A stretch of 7,269 nucleotides of DNA, from positions 1 through 7,269 of the forward strand of contig RQSC01000362.1 of NCBI GenBank assembly GCA_013416795.1. Reading direction: 5' to 3'. The stretch's first letter is position 1, and every line of letters starts with the position of its first letter. The position numbers were made by a program, and so were the translations under genes. Below are positions 1 through 7,269 of the stretch, in pieces. The notes under the pieces are model-generated. The model did not search any database and was not told the DNA's origin. It saw nothing but the letters and a program-made list of their open reading frames with translations. Source of the DNA: Prasinococcaceae sp. CCMP 1430 (Eukaryota; Plantae; Prasinodermophyta).

Positions 1-377
1 TCGATGGTGTTGTAGTCGTCCTCGTCGTCACTGGGCTCGAAGGGTGATTCCCCCGAGTCGTCCTCCTCCTCCTCCTCTTCCTCCTCCTCATCGGTGTCAT
101 TGTCGTCCTCCTCCTCCGACGTCGTTTCGTGGTCATCCAACTCGTCCTCGTTGTCCTCATCCGGGGGGGCGTCCGTGGCCTCCTCCTCGTCGTCTATGAA
201 ACTGCTGTCGTATGAACCGTCATCCTCTGTCGCGTCCTGTTCGCTGTCCATGGCGTCCTCCCCTCCATCCTCCTCCTCCGAATAATCGTCCTCAGGCATC
301 TCGGACGGGGCGTACTTCTCTGGACGTTTGACTGCGCGTCCCGATCGGGTTGTGGTGGCTGGCCTGGTCGCAGACAT
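1..377 (-). CDS. Acidic low-complexity protein with N-terminal TRSGR-x-VKRPEKY motif (3' end runs off the window); conserved NCLDV hypothetical-type protein
   Basis: Manual translation from the ATG at 377 gives MSATRPATTTRSGRAVKRPEKYAPSEMPEDDYSEEEDGGEDAMDSEQDATEDDGSYDSSFIDDEEE..., open to position 1. The 'TRSGR..K.PE.Y...EDDY...FIDD' pattern matches my recollection of small acidic proteins of prasinoviruses and related NCLDVs. It explains the TCC/TCG repeats on the + strand. Confidence 0.88.
   Translation of the reverse strand, partial: MSATRPATTTRSGRAVKRPEKYAPSEMPEDDYSEEEDGGEDAMDSEQDATEDDGSYDSSFIDDEEEATDAPPDEDNEDELDDHETTSEEEDDNDTDEEEEEEEEEDDSGESPFEPSDDEDDYNTI
61..90 (-). repeat. Imperfect (GAG)n coding trinucleotide run (poly-Glu)
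   Basis: tcctcctcctcctcctcttcctcctcctca on +, encoding the Glu run in the minus-strand acidic ORF. Confidence 0.85.
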
Positions 378-460
378 GTATACTAAGCGGTAAGATTTTG
401 TGCGGCGGTCGAGCGCCTCGAGACCAAAAATATTATCTTCTTCAAAAGTATACAAACGGC
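378..460. promoter_or_regulatory. Divergent intergenic region, putative bidirectional viral promoter
   Basis: 83-nt spacer between head-to-head ATGs (377 on -, 461 on +). It has an AT-rich core (aaaaatattatcttcttcaaaagtatacaaa) and a GTATAC palindrome near each start (378-383, 448-453). Confidence 0.55.
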
Positions 461-1999
461 ATGTCTTTGGAGAATCTCTACCCACTCCCGGTTTCGGTCA
501 ACTCGCCCACCAGCAGGTCTCCCGAGTACCAGAGGCGAATAAACGACCTCGCGGAAATGTACTTCACCGGCCACGAGATACAGGAACTGCGCACGCGCGT
601 TCCCAGCATCCGGTTCGCCATCGAAGAGGCGGACGTTTACAAGCGTTACATCGTCCACGACAACAGGAAGCTTTTGTCTAAGTTGCAGCTATTCGTCGCC
701 TCCGTGTACATATACGACCTCCTCACCGCCAACTTGCGCGAGTTGTCTGACCGTGTTGGCAATGCCACCCAGTCCTCCATGATCACGACTAGCCGCGATG
801 AGATGGCCAAGCTCGCAAATTCTCTTCGTGGGTACGTCGCCGTCGAGTGCGACCGACTGGGATCCACGGGTTGTACCGATAAAAAAGAGTCTAACGGTTA
901 CGTCTATCTGGGGCGCGTACCCCATAACGTCATCGCGAGGATCACATCACTGGAAGAAGATGGTGCTGTCACCGTTCCTAATGATAACGAGGCTCTACTT
1001 CACAAAATTCAAACCGCGGGCCCCATGGGCAGTGGAGCATATGCCATCCGCGCGTTCAAGATCGCACCCTATAACGTGCCATCTCCTACTTACCTTCTGG
1101 GTAAGGACCCTGCCGACGACTGCATGCCCGCTCGACTCATTTATCAGCTCGCGAGCAAGAAAATCGACTGCACGTATCTTTCCATGGACCACCGCAGGAG
1201 GCTAGCCAGGTTAGAAGTAGATTTCCCTCCACTTGTGAGCCAGATGTCGCAGAATATTCTTGACTCGTCTAAAAGGTACAATTATGATACGGGCGACGCG
1301 TACGGGGACATGCCCGTGGCGGGCGAAGCGTTAATCAATGTCGGAGAGCGCTCTGGCCTGAAAGCAAATATTAACACCGCCGCTGCTGCATACATCAACG
1401 AATCTCCTAAGCGTCTTGCCTCGCTGTTTACTGTAGCTGGTGAGCCTAATCTGGTTCTGACATCGTTTGAGAACGTCATCAGGGACTTTATCAAGCGCGA
1501 CATCGTCGCCTTCAACGCTCTCCGCGGTCAGATTCTTGATAAGATCGACGTCTGGTGGAAGCGCAACGGAGCGATGTCGGCCCTTAACACACACCCTTTC
1601 AAAGACGATGGCACTGTTGACGCCCAGGATTCGATTAAGTTTATTCAGAACATCCAGAAGGCGACCTACGCTCTCACCGGCACCATCCCCAAGTGTCCCA
1701 ACGGCTCCTCTACCGTTTGGTACGACAGGGACCCCACCGACGCCAAGGCCCGCATCGTGGACGAGACGATCACTGCCGCTGACGGTACGCGTGTCAGGAA
1801 CCCGTTCGCCAGGTTCGGTATGTGCGCCGACGAGCCCTTCGGGGCCGACGTGATGGCGGGGTACCCGAACCAGGGTTACGCCATTGAACCCTCTGGCGGG
1901 GGGCACTACCTCGTTAACGGCGCGCGCAGGTATAAGCGCCACACCACCGCTGCCAGGCGCACTCGCACTCGCCGACCGGCGGCGCGGAAGTATTACTGA
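461..1999 (+). CDS. Hypothetical protein, 512 aa, with Arg-rich basic C-terminal tail (possible virion/core protein)
   Basis: Long ORF with coding-like codon bias. The ATG at 461 (MSLENLYP) follows an AT-rich leader, whereas the track's start at 350 would overlap the divergent gene. It ends RRYKRHTTAARRTRTRRPAARKYY. No family recognised. Confidence 0.85.
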   Translation: MSLENLYPLPVSVNSPTSRSPEYQRRINDLAEMYFTGHEIQELRTRVPSIRFAIEEADVYKRYIVHDNRKLLSKLQLFVASVYIYDLLTANLRELSDRVGNATQSSMITTSRDEMAKLANSLRGYVAVECDRLGSTGCTDKKESNGYVYLGRVPHNVIARITSLEEDGAVTVPNDNEALLHKIQTAGPMGSGAYAIRAFKIAPYNVPSPTYLLGKDPADDCMPARLIYQLASKKIDCTYLSMDHRRRLARLEVDFPPLVSQMSQNILDSSKRYNYDTGDAYGDMPVAGEALINVGERSGLKANINTAAAAYINESPKRLASLFTVAGEPNLVLTSFENVIRDFIKRDIVAFNALRGQILDKIDVWWKRNGAMSALNTHPFKDDGTVDAQDSIKFIQNIQKATYALTGTIPKCPNGSSTVWYDRDPTDAKARIVDETITAADGTRVRNPFARFGMCADEPFGADVMAGYPNQGYAIEPSGGGHYLVNGARRYKRHTTAARRTRTRRPAARKYY

Positions 2000-2016
2000 G
2001 TCCACAGAGGGACGAC

Positions 2017-2568
2017 ATGGACAACGCGGATTCGCGTGCCTACAAGTTCGCCATGGACTATGATGACCGCAGACGTAAAGCCGACGCGTGGTGGAATGCC
2101 ATGACGGCACGTCGCGCGGCCCGCAACAACGTGTACGAACACTACATTTCTTTCAACCGCGGGCACATGGAGACGTTGGGCAGTCTGTATCGTGGTAAGC
2201 AGCAGTTGACCGAGGACGAGAAGGACGTCGTGGACGCGTACAGAGTGGAAGGAGAGCCCGCGTTGAAAGGCGACACGCTGACGGAGTGGACCGCTTCGTC
2301 CGTGCCGTCATCCGGGTGGGTTTCCTGCATAGCGTGCAGTGGCATAATGCCCGCCCACAAGGTGGAGTTCGCCAATCCCATGCCCTCTCGCGACCTGTTC
2401 GCGTTTTACCATGCCACGTGCTTCGACAGCCTTACCGCGAGCGATTCATTGCGCATTCAGGAGCGCGTGCCACCGGCGCCTGTTCCTGATATCGTCGAGA
2501 CGCAGCCAGGGGCCGTTGTCGCGGTGGATTGGGACCTTGACAAACCCACCGGGGGGTACGACTGTTGA
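2017..2568 (+). CDS. Hypothetical protein, 183 aa, with putative CxxC-x24-HxxC zinc finger
   Basis: Starts 17 nt after the upstream stop. C104-I-A-C107 ... F-Y-H132-A-T-C135-F; GC3-rich codons. Confidence 0.8.
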   Translation: MDNADSRAYKFAMDYDDRRRKADAWWNAMTARRAARNNVYEHYISFNRGHMETLGSLYRGKQQLTEDEKDVVDAYRVEGEPALKGDTLTEWTASSVPSSGWVSCIACSGIMPAHKVEFANPMPSRDLFAFYHATCFDSLTASDSLRIQERVPPAPVPDIVETQPGAVVAVDWDLDKPTGGYDC

Positions 2569-2621
2569 TTTCATTCGTCTAAAAGCGCGGATACAATTTC
2601 GCGGCCTGTATCAAGGCACGA

Positions 2622-3650
2622 ATGGCGATGGCGACGGTCTGCATTGGGAGGCCGGTGTCGACCGGCGCTGTCCCGAACGATTACCCCGATAAGTGGGTGT
2701 GCGTAGGGCCCAAACCGCGCGTTGGGCCGAAGGTTACAAAAATATACAACGAGGAGGTGCTGCTGTACAGCAGCAAGCACAGGGACGAGACATTGGCGGT
2801 GAGAAACGTGTGTCCTCATCGGGGCGCGCGCCTTTCTCACAACTGCAAAGTGGACGCGGACGATTGCGTCCGTTGCGCGTACCACGGCCTGCATTGGGGG
2901 ATGCAGAACAATGCGGATAATTACCTCGCGGCGAAGGAGGATGGAGACCTGGTCTGGGTTAACGCGGGCATCGGTGACGGCGAATCCTCGCCCCCCACAA
3001 TGCCCGAGTTCGCCGACGCGGGATACAGGACGTTTTCATACTCCACGTTCATCGGGGCCCACCCCATGATCGTCATGGAGAACCTGTTGGACCACGCGCA
3101 CCTGGAGCACGTGCACAAGGTCAAGATAGTGGACGCCAAGAGCACGGAGGTCGCCATGGACCCGGCCTCCACCGAGAGTGTTCTCACTGGGAAAAGCGTG
3201 TACGGCTACCCCGTCACGAACGACAATGTGGCTCGCATGCTGTTGGACTTTATGCCGTCAGAGGGGAGGCGGCAGGAGGGGGCGCCCGAGGGGATGAAGA
3301 TATGGGTCGAGAACGAGTTCGCGTTGCCGTACACGTCCAGCCTGCGCTTCATGATTTCCGGACACGACAAGCCCTTCTTCGTGTTATGGTTCAGCGTGCT
3401 CCCCTTCGAGAGCGACAAGTCCCTGGTCACTTGCCGCGTGTCTCGCAACATTTTGACGAGCCCGCTGTGGGACGGTTTGTTTTGGATGCTTAACCATCTC
3501 CCGCTGAAGGAGGACGACGACATCGTCCGTAACGTGGTCGCCGATGACTGGTGGCGCAATCACCTGAGGAAGAGTGACGCCTTCGTCAAATTGTACAGAG
3601 ACAAGATGAAGTCGGTGTACGGTATCATGTTTTTGGAACCGTTTGCGTAG
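2622..3650 (+). CDS. Rieske [2Fe-2S] mononuclear non-heme iron oxygenase, catalytic subunit (CAO/PAO/VanA/KshA-like superfamily)
   Basis: Rieske motif C64-P-H66-RGARLS-...-C85-A-Y-H88-G, followed by the typical 'GDLVWV' strand. Fe(II) site E153-N-L-L-D157-x2-H160-x4-H165. C-terminal carboxylate ligand region 'LKED298' and late 'SDAFVKLYR' (D....YR) helix. The start could be 2622 or 2628. Confidence 0.93.
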   Translation: MAMATVCIGRPVSTGAVPNDYPDKWVCVGPKPRVGPKVTKIYNEEVLLYSSKHRDETLAVRNVCPHRGARLSHNCKVDADDCVRCAYHGLHWGMQNNADNYLAAKEDGDLVWVNAGIGDGESSPPTMPEFADAGYRTFSYSTFIGAHPMIVMENLLDHAHLEHVHKVKIVDAKSTEVAMDPASTESVLTGKSVYGYPVTNDNVARMLLDFMPSEGRRQEGAPEGMKIWVENEFALPYTSSLRFMISGHDKPFFVLWFSVLPFESDKSLVTCRVSRNILTSPLWDGLFWMLNHLPLKEDDDIVRNVVADDWWRNHLRKSDAFVKLYRDKMKSVYGIMFLEPFA

Positions 3651-3706
3651 TTGTCACGCACATGCGTTTAAGTAGGAGCAATTTTATCAACGTATTATAT
3701 CGTATC

Positions 3707-4171
3707 ATGGAGGATCTCACGGGTCTGGCTCGTCGCCTTCGTTCTGGTGGCATGCATCAGACCAGGGCGGCGGGTGGGGGGTCGATGATGCCCCAAATGC
3801 AAGCGGCACCACCACAGGCAGGGGGCATGTCCCCTACTGCAATGAGGCTCCCATCTGTGCACTCCCAAGAGGGCTCGGAGCTATCGGGGATGACCCCTAT
3901 GGGTCCTGCCGCCATCAAGACAGGCTCTGTCGCCAAGGTCGGCAAGCATGCCACTGGACAGGCCTCTGTCGGTGGCGGGGGGTCTGGCAGCGTGCTGCCG
4001 GCCATCTTAGGAGTCGGTGCGGCCATTGGCACCATCCACTTCGGCGCGGGCGTGTTCCCTGACGTGTTCAAGGGCGCGGACGGCAAGATCGATCGCACCC
4101 GGTTGAACGTGGGGGGGGTGTTGGCCGGTTTTATTGTTTTCTTGGTAGCCAGGTACCTATATTCTCAATAA
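3707..4171 (+). CDS. Membrane protein with disordered G/M/P/Q/A-rich N-terminus and two C-terminal transmembrane helices (NCLDV-type)
   Basis: Hydrophobic segments VLPAILGVGAAIGTIHFGAGVF (3992-4057) and LNVGGVLAGFIVFLVARYLY (4103-4162), joined by a short charged loop. The ATG at 3707 is preferred over 3662 because 3662-3706 is AT-rich spacer-like sequence. Confidence 0.8.
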   Translation: MEDLTGLARRLRSGGMHQTRAAGGGSMMPQMQAAPPQAGGMSPTAMRLPSVHSQEGSELSGMTPMGPAAIKTGSVAKVGKHATGQASVGGGGSGSVLPAILGVGAAIGTIHFGAGVFPDVFKGADGKIDRTRLNVGGVLAGFIVFLVARYLYSQ

Positions 4172-4229
4172 ACGTTCGCTTAACATGTGCAATATTATTT
4201 CAATGCCAACGTTGTAAAGGGACGCAGCG

Positions 4230-4988
4230 ATGGTGGCAGAGAGGGACGACGACCCGCGCGTGGACACCAACGTGTTAGTCGACAGCAAGCGAGAGTACAT
4301 TGAGAAGCTCGAGCGCTGCCTGTCTCAGCCTATCTACAACGCGCTCAAAAACATTCTGCAAGACGCCATGAACGTGTCGGAGGTGAAGGAGCTGGACGAG
4401 CTGGAGTGCTTTTCCCAGCTGTTGTCGGAGGTGCCGAGCTGGAACGCGGACATTGTGGATTCTGAGACGCGCGAGGTGATGCAGGCGGCTCCGTTTCTCA
4501 AGGAGCTTCTCAAGGCATACTTCGTCTGTGCCAGCATGATCCTTGGCTCCATCCGCAGGTCACATCACACCGAGCAGCATCGGCTGAAGGTGAAGGTGCC
4601 GACCTGCGAGCGGTTCGTCCACTCCGTTATCAAGATGATGGCCGCCGACATTGAGGATGACATCCCTCACTACCTCACCCAGACGGAGGACGGCGAGTTC
4701 AAGCTCAGCAAGCGGCACATCATGAAGGGGGTGAGCGAGAGCATCAGGAACGCGCTGCACAGTTTTACAACCAGCGACGACATCCTAAAGGGGTACATGG
4801 ACGACATCATGGGCGACGAGCCGCCCCTGCCCCCGCGCATCCGCCTGGACGACGAAGAGCCCGCTGCCCCGAAGACCAAGTCTTTCAAGCTGGGCAGCAA
4901 CATCCTTCGCACGAGCAAGCCGACTCTCGCGGACGACGATGACGAGGATGACACCGGTGTCGTTGTGGAGGAGGACGAGGATTTTTAA
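4230..4988 (+). CDS. Conserved NCLDV protein of unknown function (DUF5764-like)
   Basis: N-terminal 'NVLVDSKREYIEKL', then 'FSQLLSEVPSWN', 'LLKAYFV...ILGSIR' and 'KVKVPTCERFVH' match the pattern I recall for this phycodnavirus/mimivirus family (NVLVEAK.EY, FQ.LLKEVPNWN, LKLP..E.F). Acidic tail. Confidence 0.8.
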   Translation: MVAERDDDPRVDTNVLVDSKREYIEKLERCLSQPIYNALKNILQDAMNVSEVKELDELECFSQLLSEVPSWNADIVDSETREVMQAAPFLKELLKAYFVCASMILGSIRRSHHTEQHRLKVKVPTCERFVHSVIKMMAADIEDDIPHYLTQTEDGEFKLSKRHIMKGVSESIRNALHSFTTSDDILKGYMDDIMGDEPPLPPRIRLDDEEPAAPKTKSFKLGSNILRTSKPTLADDDDEDDTGVVVEEDEDF

Positions 4989-5009
4989 TCGGTTTATAAA
5001 CTTAATATA

Positions 5010-5678
5010 ATGCAAGTGACCATTTCCCCAAACGGGCAAAAAATACTGTCATCATCTGCCAATTGCAAACAGGGTAGCGTGCAAAAGGTCAGGTTGCATC
5101 TGAAACAGTCTGCGTTCAAGGAAATCATAGATAGCATGCACCTCGGCGCGGAAAGGGGGGGGACGTTTGACATTGACATGAGCACGCTGGCGTTGGAAAA
5201 CAACAAGGTGGTGAACGTGGGCGGCACCAACGACGTGGAGACGCCGCATGGCATCATAGAGTGGCACACTCACCCTTCCAAATGCACGATGGGCGAGTGC
5301 TCGCTGGCGTGTCCTAGTGACATAGACATTCTCGTGTTTTTGGAGGACGCGTTGTCGGATAACGTGTCCCATTGGGTGTTCAGTCTGCTGGGCACGTTTG
5401 TGGTGTGCCTGTCCCCTGCACTTGTGGTGCGCATGCGACAGGCGCAGGACAGCGGTGGCTTTAAACAGGAGTGCAAGAGGATCCAGGACTTGTTTAATCG
5501 GTTGCAGGAACAGTTTGCGTCTCGCTACGTCACTTCGAAGGACGAGGCTGAGAAACGGAGGCACGAGGAATGGCACAAGGCGCAATGGATCAAGTTGGCG
5601 CGCGATACCGGTTTCGCCGTCGCGGTATTCCCCTGGGGGGCAAAGCCCAGTATCGAAGTGCTCGTGCAGTGCGGTTGA
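5010..5678 (+). CDS. JAB/MPN+ (JAMM)-like metalloprotein
   Basis: E48 in 'AERGGTF', then 'IEWH86-T-H88-P ... P-S103-D-I-D106', then a hydrophobic strand 'HWVFSLLGTFVV'. This is the order of JAMM catalytic residues, but the H-to-S spacing is 14 rather than the canonical 7. Confidence 0.65.
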   Translation: MQVTISPNGQKILSSSANCKQGSVQKVRLHLKQSAFKEIIDSMHLGAERGGTFDIDMSTLALENNKVVNVGGTNDVETPHGIIEWHTHPSKCTMGECSLACPSDIDILVFLEDALSDNVSHWVFSLLGTFVVCLSPALVVRMRQAQDSGGFKQECKRIQDLFNRLQEQFASRYVTSKDEAEKRRHEEWHKAQWIKLARDTGFAVAVFPWGAKPSIEVLVQCG

Positions 5679-5725
5679 GCTCGTCACCGGCGCGATAATA
5701 GTTCTCTAGGCCTGTACTTGAAGGC

Positions 5726-6514
5726 ATGGATGTCAACTTGAGGAAGTTCGACCCGTCGCGCATTAAAGATGACAGCGTGGTGTGCATCGTATCCAAACGC
5801 GGTTCTGGCAAGACCACGCTGGCCACGGATCTCATGTACCATAAGCGCCACATCCCTTCCGGTATCGTGTTGTCTGGCACGGAGGGGTCTAACAAGCATT
5901 GGGGTAAGTATATACCATCGCTGTTTATCTACAACCAGTTTAATCGCGGGGCTCTCAAGGCGCTCATCAAGAACCAAAAGGCTAAGGCCAAGAGAGGCGA
6001 CGAGTCTCACGCGTTCGTCGTGATGGACGATTGCGTGTACGATGCCACCGTGATGCGCGACCCGTGCATCCAGGAAATAGCTCTCAATGGGCGGCACATG
6101 CACATCTTCTTTTTGTTCATCACGCAGTACACTATGAACGTGTGGCCTGTCATCCGCAGCAACATCGATTACGTGTTCGCGCTGAAGGAGAACATCATCA
6201 TGAACAGGGAGAAACTGTACAAGAACTTCTTCGGCATCGTGCCGACCTTCGAGGCGTTCTGCCACATATTAAACGAGTGCACGCAGAACTACGAATGCCT
6301 GGTGATCGACCACACCAGCGGGTCGAATAAGCTAGAGGACGTTATCTTCTGGTACAAGGGCGAGACGAGGCCGCCGTTCAGGGTCGGCTCTTCTAATTAC
6401 TGGAAATATGCAAGCCTCCATCATGATCCTAAGAAAGACGATTCGGACAGCGACACAGAGACGGACAACAGGCGCATATCAACGCGCGTGGTCAAACACC
6501 CAGCGTGCGATTAA
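5726..6514 (+). CDS. A32: A32-like virion DNA packaging ATPase (FtsK-HerA superfamily)
   Basis: N-terminus 'MDVNLRKFDPSRIKDDSVVCIV', Walker A 'SKRGSGKT', 'SGTE', Walker B 'FVVMDD', family motifs 'NGRH' and 'ITQY', and 'RSNIDYVF..EN..NREKLYKNFFG', 'CTQNYECLV', 'FWYK'. Confidence 0.97.
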   Translation: MDVNLRKFDPSRIKDDSVVCIVSKRGSGKTTLATDLMYHKRHIPSGIVLSGTEGSNKHWGKYIPSLFIYNQFNRGALKALIKNQKAKAKRGDESHAFVVMDDCVYDATVMRDPCIQEIALNGRHMHIFFLFITQYTMNVWPVIRSNIDYVFALKENIIMNREKLYKNFFGIVPTFEAFCHILNECTQNYECLVIDHTSGSNKLEDVIFWYKGETRPPFRVGSSNYWKYASLHHDPKKDDSDSDTETDNRRISTRVVKHPACD

Positions 6515-6769
6515 ATAATACCAAAATGCAGCCGCCGCAAAGGCACGTTGGCTGACTTATTACGCTACCATTTAATTAAAATCCTTTGCCATGAAAATCA
6601 CAATGAGTACTGGCCTGCATGCCCCTTGGCATAACACAAACAGCAAAGTGCGCTGACACTGTAGGAAATCTAGCTATCGCTGGCGTAAACTGGCCACGAT
6701 AAACGAAAGAGAGAGTTCAAAACGGCCATTGCTCATTCAGGCAAGGCACTTCCATGGCCTTTAGCTACA

Positions 6770-7269
6770 CTACTTAAATGGCAGCTCCATCTTAATGCGC
6801 TTGGGAGCCCCCTGCGAGACCGGCTCGTGGTCGCCGTCGGTGGCGGCGGCACCGGTCACAACACCAACACACAGCGCAGACGCAGATGTGTAGTGGTCTA
6901 CAGCGGCGGCGACAGCGGAGGCGACCATGGCGCGCAGGGAAGTATGTTGTGCGCCATCCGGTACAGTGGAAGCAGCAGCGGAGGCGACAAGTGGGGCAGA
7001 GGGCACCACGGACTCGGGTACAAGCACGTACCCTGGAGGCAGACCGAGCGCCACCAGCTCTGTCGACGCGCGCTGCTGCTGCTGCTGCTGTGGGAGTGCC
7101 TGCGGCATCTGGAGGCGCTGTGCAATTGTCCGCGTCACTGCCTTATGCTCCTGCAGTCGCTTTGTGTAGGCCTCCTGCTGCCGCTCGTATACCTCACGCT
7201 GCTTTGCGTAGTCCTGCTGCTGCTCCTTCGTGTTGTTAGCCTGCACGAGAGCGGCCTCCGCCGTAAGCC
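6770..7269 (-). CDS. Partial (5'-truncated) coiled-coil / polyQ / Ala-rich protein or terminal exon, eukaryote-like
   Basis: The frame is open from the window edge (LTAEAALVQANNTKEQQQDYAKQREVYERQQEAY...) to the TAG at 6770-6772. The track's start at 7246 is an internal GTG. Q/E/K/R-rich helical segment, Q6 run, C-terminal 'PKRIKMELPFK'. Confidence 0.6.
   Translation of the reverse strand, partial: LTAEAALVQANNTKEQQQDYAKQREVYERQQEAYTKRLQEHKAVTRTIAQRLQMPQALPQQQQQQRASTELVALGLPPGYVLVPESVVPSAPLVASAAASTVPDGAQHTSLRAMVASAVAAAVDHYTSASALCVGVVTGAAATDGDHEPVSQGAPKRIKMELPFK
7073..7090 (-). repeat. (CAG)6 microsatellite encoding polyQ
   Basis: ctg x6 on the + strand; QQQQQQ in the minus-strand ORF. Confidence 0.9.

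Follow-up and report, generated by a model that had tools for sequence, protein, structure and literature searches.

Algal giant viruses rewire infected cells by means of auxiliary metabolic genes, and giant viruses with oxygenases are already known. Among the Rieske oxygenases, bacterial enzymes of the DdmC/VanA type are encoded in catabolic operons together with ferredoxin and reductase genes, and the Ndm enzymes are served by a dedicated reductase, NdmD. Here we describe a Rieske oxygenase gene at 2622..3650 of a stretch of DNA of 7,269 nucleotides (contig RQSC01000362.1, positions 1 to 7,269; hereafter the window), which an earlier, sequence-only reading had presented as a complete enzyme gene lying inside a giant-virus packaging gene block. 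The reading that we favour, and to which we assign a probability of about 0.7, is that the product would be a soluble and catalytically competent enzyme, a Rieske monooxygenase of the structural class of VanA, DdmC, Ndm, Sxt and KshA, that it belongs to a giant-virus-specific family and that the gene lies, most likely, in an endogenised viral region of the alga Mesostigma viride. The gene and its two predicted domains are as follows.

2622..3650, plus strand: Rieske non-haem iron oxygenase gene, ATG start, 342 residues, no breaks (from the list of open reading frames, Pfam, the ligand positions, the AlphaFold2 model and Foldseek)
2694..2903, plus strand: predicted Rieske [2Fe-2S] domain, residues 25–94, with C64/H66/C85/H88 (Pfam PF00355; four ligands present in 34 of 34 relatives)
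3054..3560, plus strand: predicted catalytic domain of VanA_C type, residues 145–313, with bridging D157 and iron ligands H160/H165/D298 (Pfam PF19112; motifs align with SxtT, DdmC and NdmA)

Analysis of the window protein with Pfam revealed a Rieske domain (PF00355) at residues 25–94, with an E-value of 2.5e-10 and a score of 40.6 bits against a cut-off of 20.3, and a VanA_C domain (PF19112) at residues 145–313, with an E-value of 4.1e-9 and a score of 37.3 bits against a cut-off of 23.5. The gene is intronless, and in-frame stops are found upstream of its ATG. Counting of residues in the translation of 2622..3650 confirmed C64, H66, C85, H88, N154, D157, H160, H165 and D298 at the positions first given for them. 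The first four make up the CxH...CxxH cluster motif (C64-x-H66 and C85-x-x-H88), and the mononuclear site residues D157, H160, H165 and D298 align with the counterpart motifs in SxtT, DdmC and NdmA. The sequence-only reading had counted all nine as cofactor ligands; their positions stand, but we take neither N154 nor D157 to be a metal ligand: N154 would belong to the second shell, and D157 is presumably the aspartate that forms the bridge between neighbouring subunits, from a Rieske histidine on one side to a histidine ligand of the iron on the other.

The same reading had noted a Rieske domain close to the start of the protein and had found neither a PAO/Tic55-type CxxC at the C-terminus nor a membrane anchor, and on each of these points it was right. 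The sole CxxC in the whole 342-residue protein is C82/C85, within the Rieske motif, and no membrane helix is predicted, the highest mean Kyte–Doolittle hydropathy over 19 residues being 0.98. The Rieske domain is preceded by some 24 residues that are disordered in the AlphaFold2 (AF2) model and variable among the three closest copies; this short N-terminus is compatible with the presence or the absence of a targeting signal, and the cytosolic location first suggested is accordingly only a possible one.

The AF2 monomer model, for which the input was a 34-sequence alignment of the family, has a predicted local distance difference test score (pLDDT) of 89.8 and a predicted template modelling (TM) score of 0.87. 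The pLDDT falls below 50 only at residues 1–14, and the first strand begins at residue 25. The two-domain fold of these enzymes, a Rieske β-sandwich and a helix-grip catalytic domain, is found in the model. Comparison of the model with the Protein Data Bank (PDB) using Foldseek gave 297 matches at E ≤ 1e-3, and among the 50 matches listed, all are Rieske oxygenases. The E-values are lowest, at 4e-18, for GxtA and SxtT, and the best TM score, 0.73–0.74, is that of DdmC; NdmA, guaiacol O-demethylase (7qwt), carbazole dioxygenase and KshA follow.

Searches of PDB sequences ranked the solved enzymes in a similar way. With the window protein as query, SxtT and GxtA are the best matches (E ~1e-7; best 1.4e-7), followed by DdmC, NdmA and KshA. 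With a profile of the family as query, E-values of 1.3e-27 and 1.9e-25 were obtained for SxtT and GxtA, ~1e-24 for NdmA and NdmB, 9e-22 for DdmC and 3e-20 for KshA. Among the nearest proteins outside the family (n = 90), VanA_C is found in 75, KshA_C in 40 and PaO in 3. Within the window protein, KshA_C (PF19298) scores 19.3 bits, below its cut-off of 23.3, and PaO (PF08417) has no match at E ≤ 0.01. From these comparisons, we class the window protein in the Rieske superfamily and in the VanA_C structural class, outside the PAO/CAO family and outside every characterised equivalog.

The closest copy of the gene for which DNA is available, at a locus that we call L001, is 66% identical. Codon-by-codon comparison of the two genes gives identities of 72%, 83% and 56% at the first, second and third positions, with 0.26 nonsynonymous changes per site (dN) and 0.83–0.95 synonymous changes per site (dS). 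The resulting dN/dS of 0.28–0.32 points to purifying selection on the Rieske gene, with the reservation that a dS of ~0.9 is near saturation and that the ratio is mostly a record of the viral past. Because homologues are found with E-values down to 1e-151 and because dN/dS is ~0.28–0.32, the open reading frame (ORF) at 2622..3650 is not a chance product of GC-rich DNA. The original description of an intact and complete Rieske oxygenase ORF is thus upheld by the ORF itself, by both Pfam domains and by a confident model that folds like Rieske oxygenases, and dN/dS, which had been proposed as a check for decay, speaks for constraint.

To place the window protein, 1.84 billion representative sequences were searched with HMMER, and 757 matches were obtained at E ≤ 1e-3. 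Ahead of the generic Rieske oxygenases, there is a distinct shell of ~40 proteins of ~270–355 residues with E-values of 1e-48 to 1e-16. All of these are metagenomic and bear only automatic names, such as 'phenylpropionate dioxygenase-like ... large terminal subunit'. A word-indexed search returned only three close relatives, namely two Mesostigma gene models and one Logan contig. In a neighbour-joining tree of 135 sequences, calculated without support values and used for clustering only, the family forms one cluster, inside which the window protein and two full-length close copies, one a Mesostigma model and the other a Logan contig, make up a tight branch. VanA_C is matched in 21 of 34 family members, KshA_C in 6 and PaO, weakly (E 0.0014), in 1.

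Family members occur on contigs with chlorovirus-type capsid genes, often beside a deoxynucleoside kinase gene, and a major capsid protein or P9_TM gene lies within 10 kb of the Rieske gene in 10 family loci. P9_TM is accompanied by DUF5899 at L002, which is from a 103-kb contig, and by PBCV_P4 and Evr1_Alr at L004, and it is present also at L009 and L010. The 98-kb viral contig of L008 encodes a major capsid protein of nucleocytoplasmic large DNA viruses, with a haem oxygenase gene (L008:1846-2442) directly upstream of it; at L006, L025, L027 and L028, a capsid-protein homologue is encoded 2–6 kb upstream of the Rieske gene. L011 is an 88-kb contig from IMG/VR. Matches in IMG/VR were obtained with a closer alignment of 11 sequences; scans of IMG/VR with the window protein alone or with a 4-sequence alignment gave no match. 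Taking these data together, we assign the window protein, by its sequence, to a discrete family of ~300–345-residue proteins encoded on giant-virus contigs.

No paper describing a giant-virus Rieske family of ~300–345 residues was found in the literature, in keeping with the earlier view of this protein as an uncharacterised viral enzyme; the only related statement concerned PAO-domain proteins in Phycodnaviridae. The gene is not a one-off, since members of the family occur on numerous giant-virus contigs from metagenomes and the fold recurs in two viral entries of UniProt. A second and separate group of giant-virus Rieske proteins was also seen. Its members (loci L012–L016 and L034–L052) have 374–400 residues and 22–27% identity to the family, and their contigs, several of them labelled GVMAG, have a G+C content of 0.24–0.39.

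Conservation of the ligands within the family is uneven. The Rieske ligands C64, H66, C85 and H88 are invariant in 34 of 34 members, D157 is present in 31, H160 in 28, and H165 and D298 in 27 each. The losses fall mainly in one subgroup of ~10 proteins (P0026, P0030, P0032, P0036, P0038, P0039, P0041, P0042, P0043 and P0045), which keeps the cluster motif and is without the D-x2-H-x4-H motif and the Asp ligand. These proteins may be non-catalytic, electron-carrier-like derivatives. One ligand-loss member, at L009:3307-4206, stands in the same order of deoxynucleoside kinase, small ORF, Rieske and RING genes as intact members.

The place of the Rieske gene in the window is best appreciated alongside its neighbours, which are as follows.

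350..1999, plus strand: large gene, 549 residues from TTG, first gene of the conserved block; 34% identical to a cut 453-residue gene of L018
2017..2568, plus strand: 183-residue gene, left neighbour of the insertion slot; 33% identical to the 199-residue gene of L018
3662..4171, plus strand: 169-residue gene, right neighbour of the insertion slot; 26% identical (E 3e-5) to the 190-residue gene of L018
4230..4988, plus strand: DUF5764 gene (Pfam PF19068, E 1.5e-23); 58% identical to its L018 homologue
5010..5678, plus strand: 222-residue gene, part of the conserved block; 39% identical to the 231-residue gene of L018
5726..6514, plus strand: A32-like packaging ATPase (Pox_A32 21.6 bits, cut-off 22.8; 456 homologues, many with a precomputed PF04665 match)
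6770..7246, minus strand: 158-residue Gln/Ala-rich ORF, convergent with the A32 gene

L018 and L019, which are contigs from short-read assemblies, are collinear with the window, and the A32-like proteins of the window and L018 are 63% identical. In L018, the 199-residue and 190-residue genes are direct neighbours, separated by 77 bp with no Rieske gene between them, and it is exactly between their counterparts of 183 and 169 residues that the Rieske gene is situated in the window. Since L018 is collinear but lacks a Rieske gene, we conclude that this gene entered the conserved block as a lineage-specific accessory insertion, at the junction of two genes that stand side by side in the collinear relative. 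At L001, the genes that flank the Rieske gene are unrelated to those of the window, and an A32 homologue was found within the fetched flanks of 0 of the 22 other family loci. Linkage of the Rieske gene to A32, which it had been proposed to examine, is therefore not a property of the family: it is seen in none of these loci within the flanks fetched, and the L018 block has no Rieske gene.

Genes are packed in the window in the manner of viruses. Seven are encoded on the plus strand with spacers of 11–58 bp. The minus strand has one gene, close to the right end, and an acidic ORF that is cut by the left end of the window; all eight complete ORFs are unbroken. The G+C content at third codon positions (GC3) is 0.81 for the Rieske gene and 0.65–0.83 for its neighbours. 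The window is of viral type throughout its length. Recognisable domains are present in only two of the neighbours, the DUF5764 protein and the A32-like ATPase, and the neighbours of 549, 183, 169, 222 and 158 residues have no match in Pfam at a relaxed threshold or in PDB sequences. Searching PDB sequences with the A32 protein gave only chance-level P-loop matches. The description of the surroundings as a giant-virus packaging block is thus accurate as to their giant-virus type, but a single gene, that of the A32-like ATPase, has to do with packaging and the rest are without known function.

Some further features of the neighbours were noted. The TTG start at 350 probably overextends the first gene, in which the first ATG is at 461, and the encoded protein has a strongly basic C-terminal tail. 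The 169-residue protein ends in a hydrophobic segment (Kyte–Doolittle 1.85 at residues 148–166) with the look of a tail anchor. In the 222-residue protein, a His-x-His...Ser-Asp-x-Asp stretch, conserved in the L018 homologue (39% identity), is reminiscent of a metalloprotease-type motif; the single-sequence AF2 model of this protein is poor (pLDDT 43.3) and was not used for a fold search. The largest non-coding stretch, 255 bp with a G+C content of 0.46, is at 6515-6769, between the A32 gene and the 158-residue ORF. The ORF at the left end, which starts at ~299 and points away from the first plus-strand gene, is extremely rich in Asp and Glu and overlaps TCC triplet repeats at 61-89 and 256-279.

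The A32-like protein also points to the genome in which the window resides. It is 95% identical to the Mesostigma viride gene model Mv10148, and the cluster at 90% identity or above around Mv10148 contains 8 distinct sequences and ~15 Mesostigma gene models, with more Mesostigma paralogues at 63–77%. Several members of the A32 cluster are short, at 126–228 residues, three of them having 126–164. Two Rieske paralogues are present among the Mesostigma models, one full length at 66% identity and one truncated at 251 residues. Exact look-ups of the window Rieske protein and of the 95%-identical A32 model found no record, and none of the Mesostigma proteins is identical to a protein of the window. 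M. viride has been reported to have the highest content of viral regions among streptophytes, 1.19% of the genome with 222 Megaviricetes regions, and its high-confidence viral regions are embedded in the genome (2026 preprint, 10.1101/2025.04.19.649669). The 95% match of A32 to a multi-copy Mesostigma cluster and these reported regions lead us to regard the window as most likely one copy of an endogenous giant-virus element that is present several times over in M. viride, or in an alga or strain very close to it. The gene would thus most likely be set in an endogenous viral element and not in a free virus genome.

The mechanism that we propose for the Rieske protein follows that established for the class. 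The protein would form a head-to-tail α3 trimer. Electrons from NAD(P)H would pass by way of a ferredoxin and/or a reductase to the [2Fe-2S] cluster at C64/H66/C85/H88, and would then cross the subunit interface via D157 to reach Fe(II) at H160/H165/D298, where O2 would be activated. No ferredoxin or reductase Pfam family was found in the window or in six annotated family loci, searched to 10 kb on either side of the Rieske gene; a dedicated partner is not a strict criterion for the enzyme class, and with no partner gene nearby, we assume a host donor, presumably a host ferredoxin or reductase. Because monooxygenases and demethylases predominate among the close structural relatives, we expect a small organic substrate to be hydroxylated once, or to lose a methyl group from N or O by oxidation, rather than to undergo cis-dihydroxylation. 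In the virus, the gene would serve as an auxiliary metabolic gene whose product acts on a host or viral metabolite during infection.

Several observations, in addition to the near-saturated dS, weigh against this account. Identity to every solved enzyme among the Foldseek matches is only 13–19%, and none of the NCBIfam equivalog models (SdmA, BenA, AndA, GbcA and others) comes near its cut-off, the best being SdmA with 20.6 bits against 600. Catalysis is not a family-wide property, given the subgroup that has lost the mononuclear site. The trimer, the metal loading and the electron donor are carried over by analogy from the mechanism of the enzyme class. As to the genomic setting, there are ~15 near-identical A32 models in the Mesostigma set but no Rieske model above 66% identity; it may be that sister copies of the block are without the Rieske gene, or that the window derives from a different strain or assembly. 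Finally, the endogenous Rieske copy could be silent.

The last point leads to the strongest of the alternatives, in which the gene is, in its present place, a silent relic of an endogenised virus, inactive in the alga and intact because the insertion is young. We rate this at somewhat less than an even chance. The window matches a multi-copy family of viral regions in Mesostigma, models elsewhere in that genome are truncated (the 251-residue Rieske paralogue and the A32 cluster members of 126–228 residues) and dN/dS reflects mainly divergence in the viral phase. On the other hand, all eight complete ORFs of the window are unbroken and retain virus-like spacing, and every ligand of the Rieske protein is intact. 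Moreover, the relic explanation bears only on what the gene does now and leaves room for the enzyme mechanism proposed above for the viral phase.

Of the more specific proposals for the substrate, we consider it unlikely that the protein is a sterol or steroid oxygenase of the KshA, Neverland or bacterial SdmA type, acting on host membrane sterols or lipids for the benefit of the virion membrane or in manipulation of the host. The weak KshA_C match, 19.3 bits in the window protein and present in 6 of 34 members, would fit such a role, as would the identity of the top NCBIfam model, SdmA, a 4β-methylsterol monooxygenase, and the appearance of KshA structures among the Foldseek and profile matches. 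The KshA_C score is nevertheless below the 23.3-bit cut-off; SdmA reaches at most 36.5 bits in relatives of the window protein, far from 600, and its match spans the Rieske domain only. In addition, KshA ranks below the Sxt, Ndm and DdmC enzymes, and the window protein has no membrane anchor.

Slightly less likely again is a purine, pyrimidine or nucleoside substrate; the protein might then hydroxylate or N-demethylate modified bases, for example, and so feed an adjacent deoxynucleoside kinase in nucleotide salvage. The best solved matches by sequence and profile, SxtT/GxtA and NdmA/NdmB, do act on purine-like heterocycles, and 7 of the 22 other family loci have a deoxynucleoside kinase gene no more than 700 bp from the Rieske gene. 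Its arrangement takes two forms: upstream and divergent in L002, L004, L009, L010, L020 and L022, and, in L011, downstream in the same orientation (Pfam dNK, E 1e-39). One of the loci with a kinase gene also has a DNA methylase gene. This adjacency is, however, limited to one high-GC subclade with a conserved wider gene order, and because that order, including RING and P9_TM, is conserved as well, inherited synteny is the simpler explanation. There is no kinase gene beside the Rieske gene in the window, L001, L006, L008 and others, and identity to the Ndm and Sxt enzymes is below 20%. We know of no virus with nucleobase salvage or DNA-modification chemistry of this sort.

The tetrapyrrole oxygenases of the PAO/CAO/Tic55/PTC52 (LLS1) type, which would remodel or detoxify host pigments, had been put forward as candidates at the outset, and we regard a protein of this type as similarly unlikely here. 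Its attractions are a host in the green-alga lineage, the PAO-domain Rieske proteins reported in the Phycodnaviridae pangenome (PMC10598087) and the haem oxygenase gene situated ~8 kb upstream of the Rieske gene at L008. PaO is, however, absent from the window protein, weak in 1 of 34 family members and found in 3 of the 90 nearest outgroup proteins; there is no C-terminal CxxC, no membrane helix and no clear transit peptide, and the best solved relatives are of the Sxt, Ndm, DdmC and KshA types. The PAO-type reading was rejected on these grounds, and the Phycodnaviridae proteins of PMC10598087 are a different family from the window protein.

A cellular gene of algal or bacterial origin, joined to viral DNA by misassembly or by recent host-to-virus capture, is barely credible and was likewise rejected: the relatives just beyond the family are indeed generic VanA_C/KshA_C Rieske proteins, but the gene is intronless and matches its neighbours in GC3 and spacing, it is flanked by two genes conserved in L018 and it nests in a family found on many independent viral contigs.

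Returning to the favoured reading, a virus-specific family of Rieske monooxygenases would add a reaction dependent on O2 and iron to the auxiliary metabolism of giant viruses, and the copy in the window would indicate that such a gene can enter the genome of a streptophyte alga intact, within an endogenised virus. As a type, the enzyme is standard and well known, so that interest centres on the substrate and the electron donor. The subgroup that has the cluster and is without the catalytic iron site hints that the family may also have a role other than catalysis. We see the value of the analysis in three points: the accessory insertion in an endogenised block, the definition of a virus-specific family and the subgroup with loss of the iron ligands.

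Comparison with the described enzymes places these conclusions in context. The cyanobacterial monooxygenases SxtT and GxtA (SxtDIOX; PDB 6wn3, 6wnc and related entries) are similar in size to the window protein (~334 residues), share its Rieske plus VanA-like layout and have cluster and iron motifs that align with its own. Identity is nonetheless only 18–19%, with TM scores of ~0.61–0.69, and SxtT and GxtA come from a cyanobacterial biosynthetic cluster whereas the window protein comes from a viral clade; there is no sign of the same substrate. NdmA and NdmB (PDB 6ick and 6icl) are trimeric, monooxygenase-type Rieske enzymes to which the family profile aligns over 13–293 of its 304 positions, the Asp-ligand motif included. 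They differ from the window protein in having 17–19% identity to it and a length greater by ~30 residues, and no partner gene is seen near the viral Rieske genes.

DdmC/VanA (PDB 3gb4) resembles the window protein in that VanA_C is matched above its cut-off, in the highest TM score, that of DdmC, and in having the iron-ligand histidines at the same residue numbers; it is unlike it in that identity is 16–17% and the viral gene is not part of a catabolic operon. KshA (PDB 2zyl and 4qdc) is of the same structural class with weaker matches, a KshA_C score below the cut-off and 13–15% identity. The PAO/CAO/Tic55/PTC52 proteins are also Rieske and mononuclear iron oxygenases, and they occur in green lineages and in some algal viruses, but the window protein is without their PaO domain, C-terminal CxxC and membrane helix and has a different closest clade. 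Of the viral proteins with predicted structures in BFVD, only A0A0P0YMZ6 and F2Y2Q3 share this fold (E 1e-19 and 5e-15; TM 0.66–0.77); at 14–19% identity, they have 301 and 312 residues, the size characteristic of the giant-virus family.

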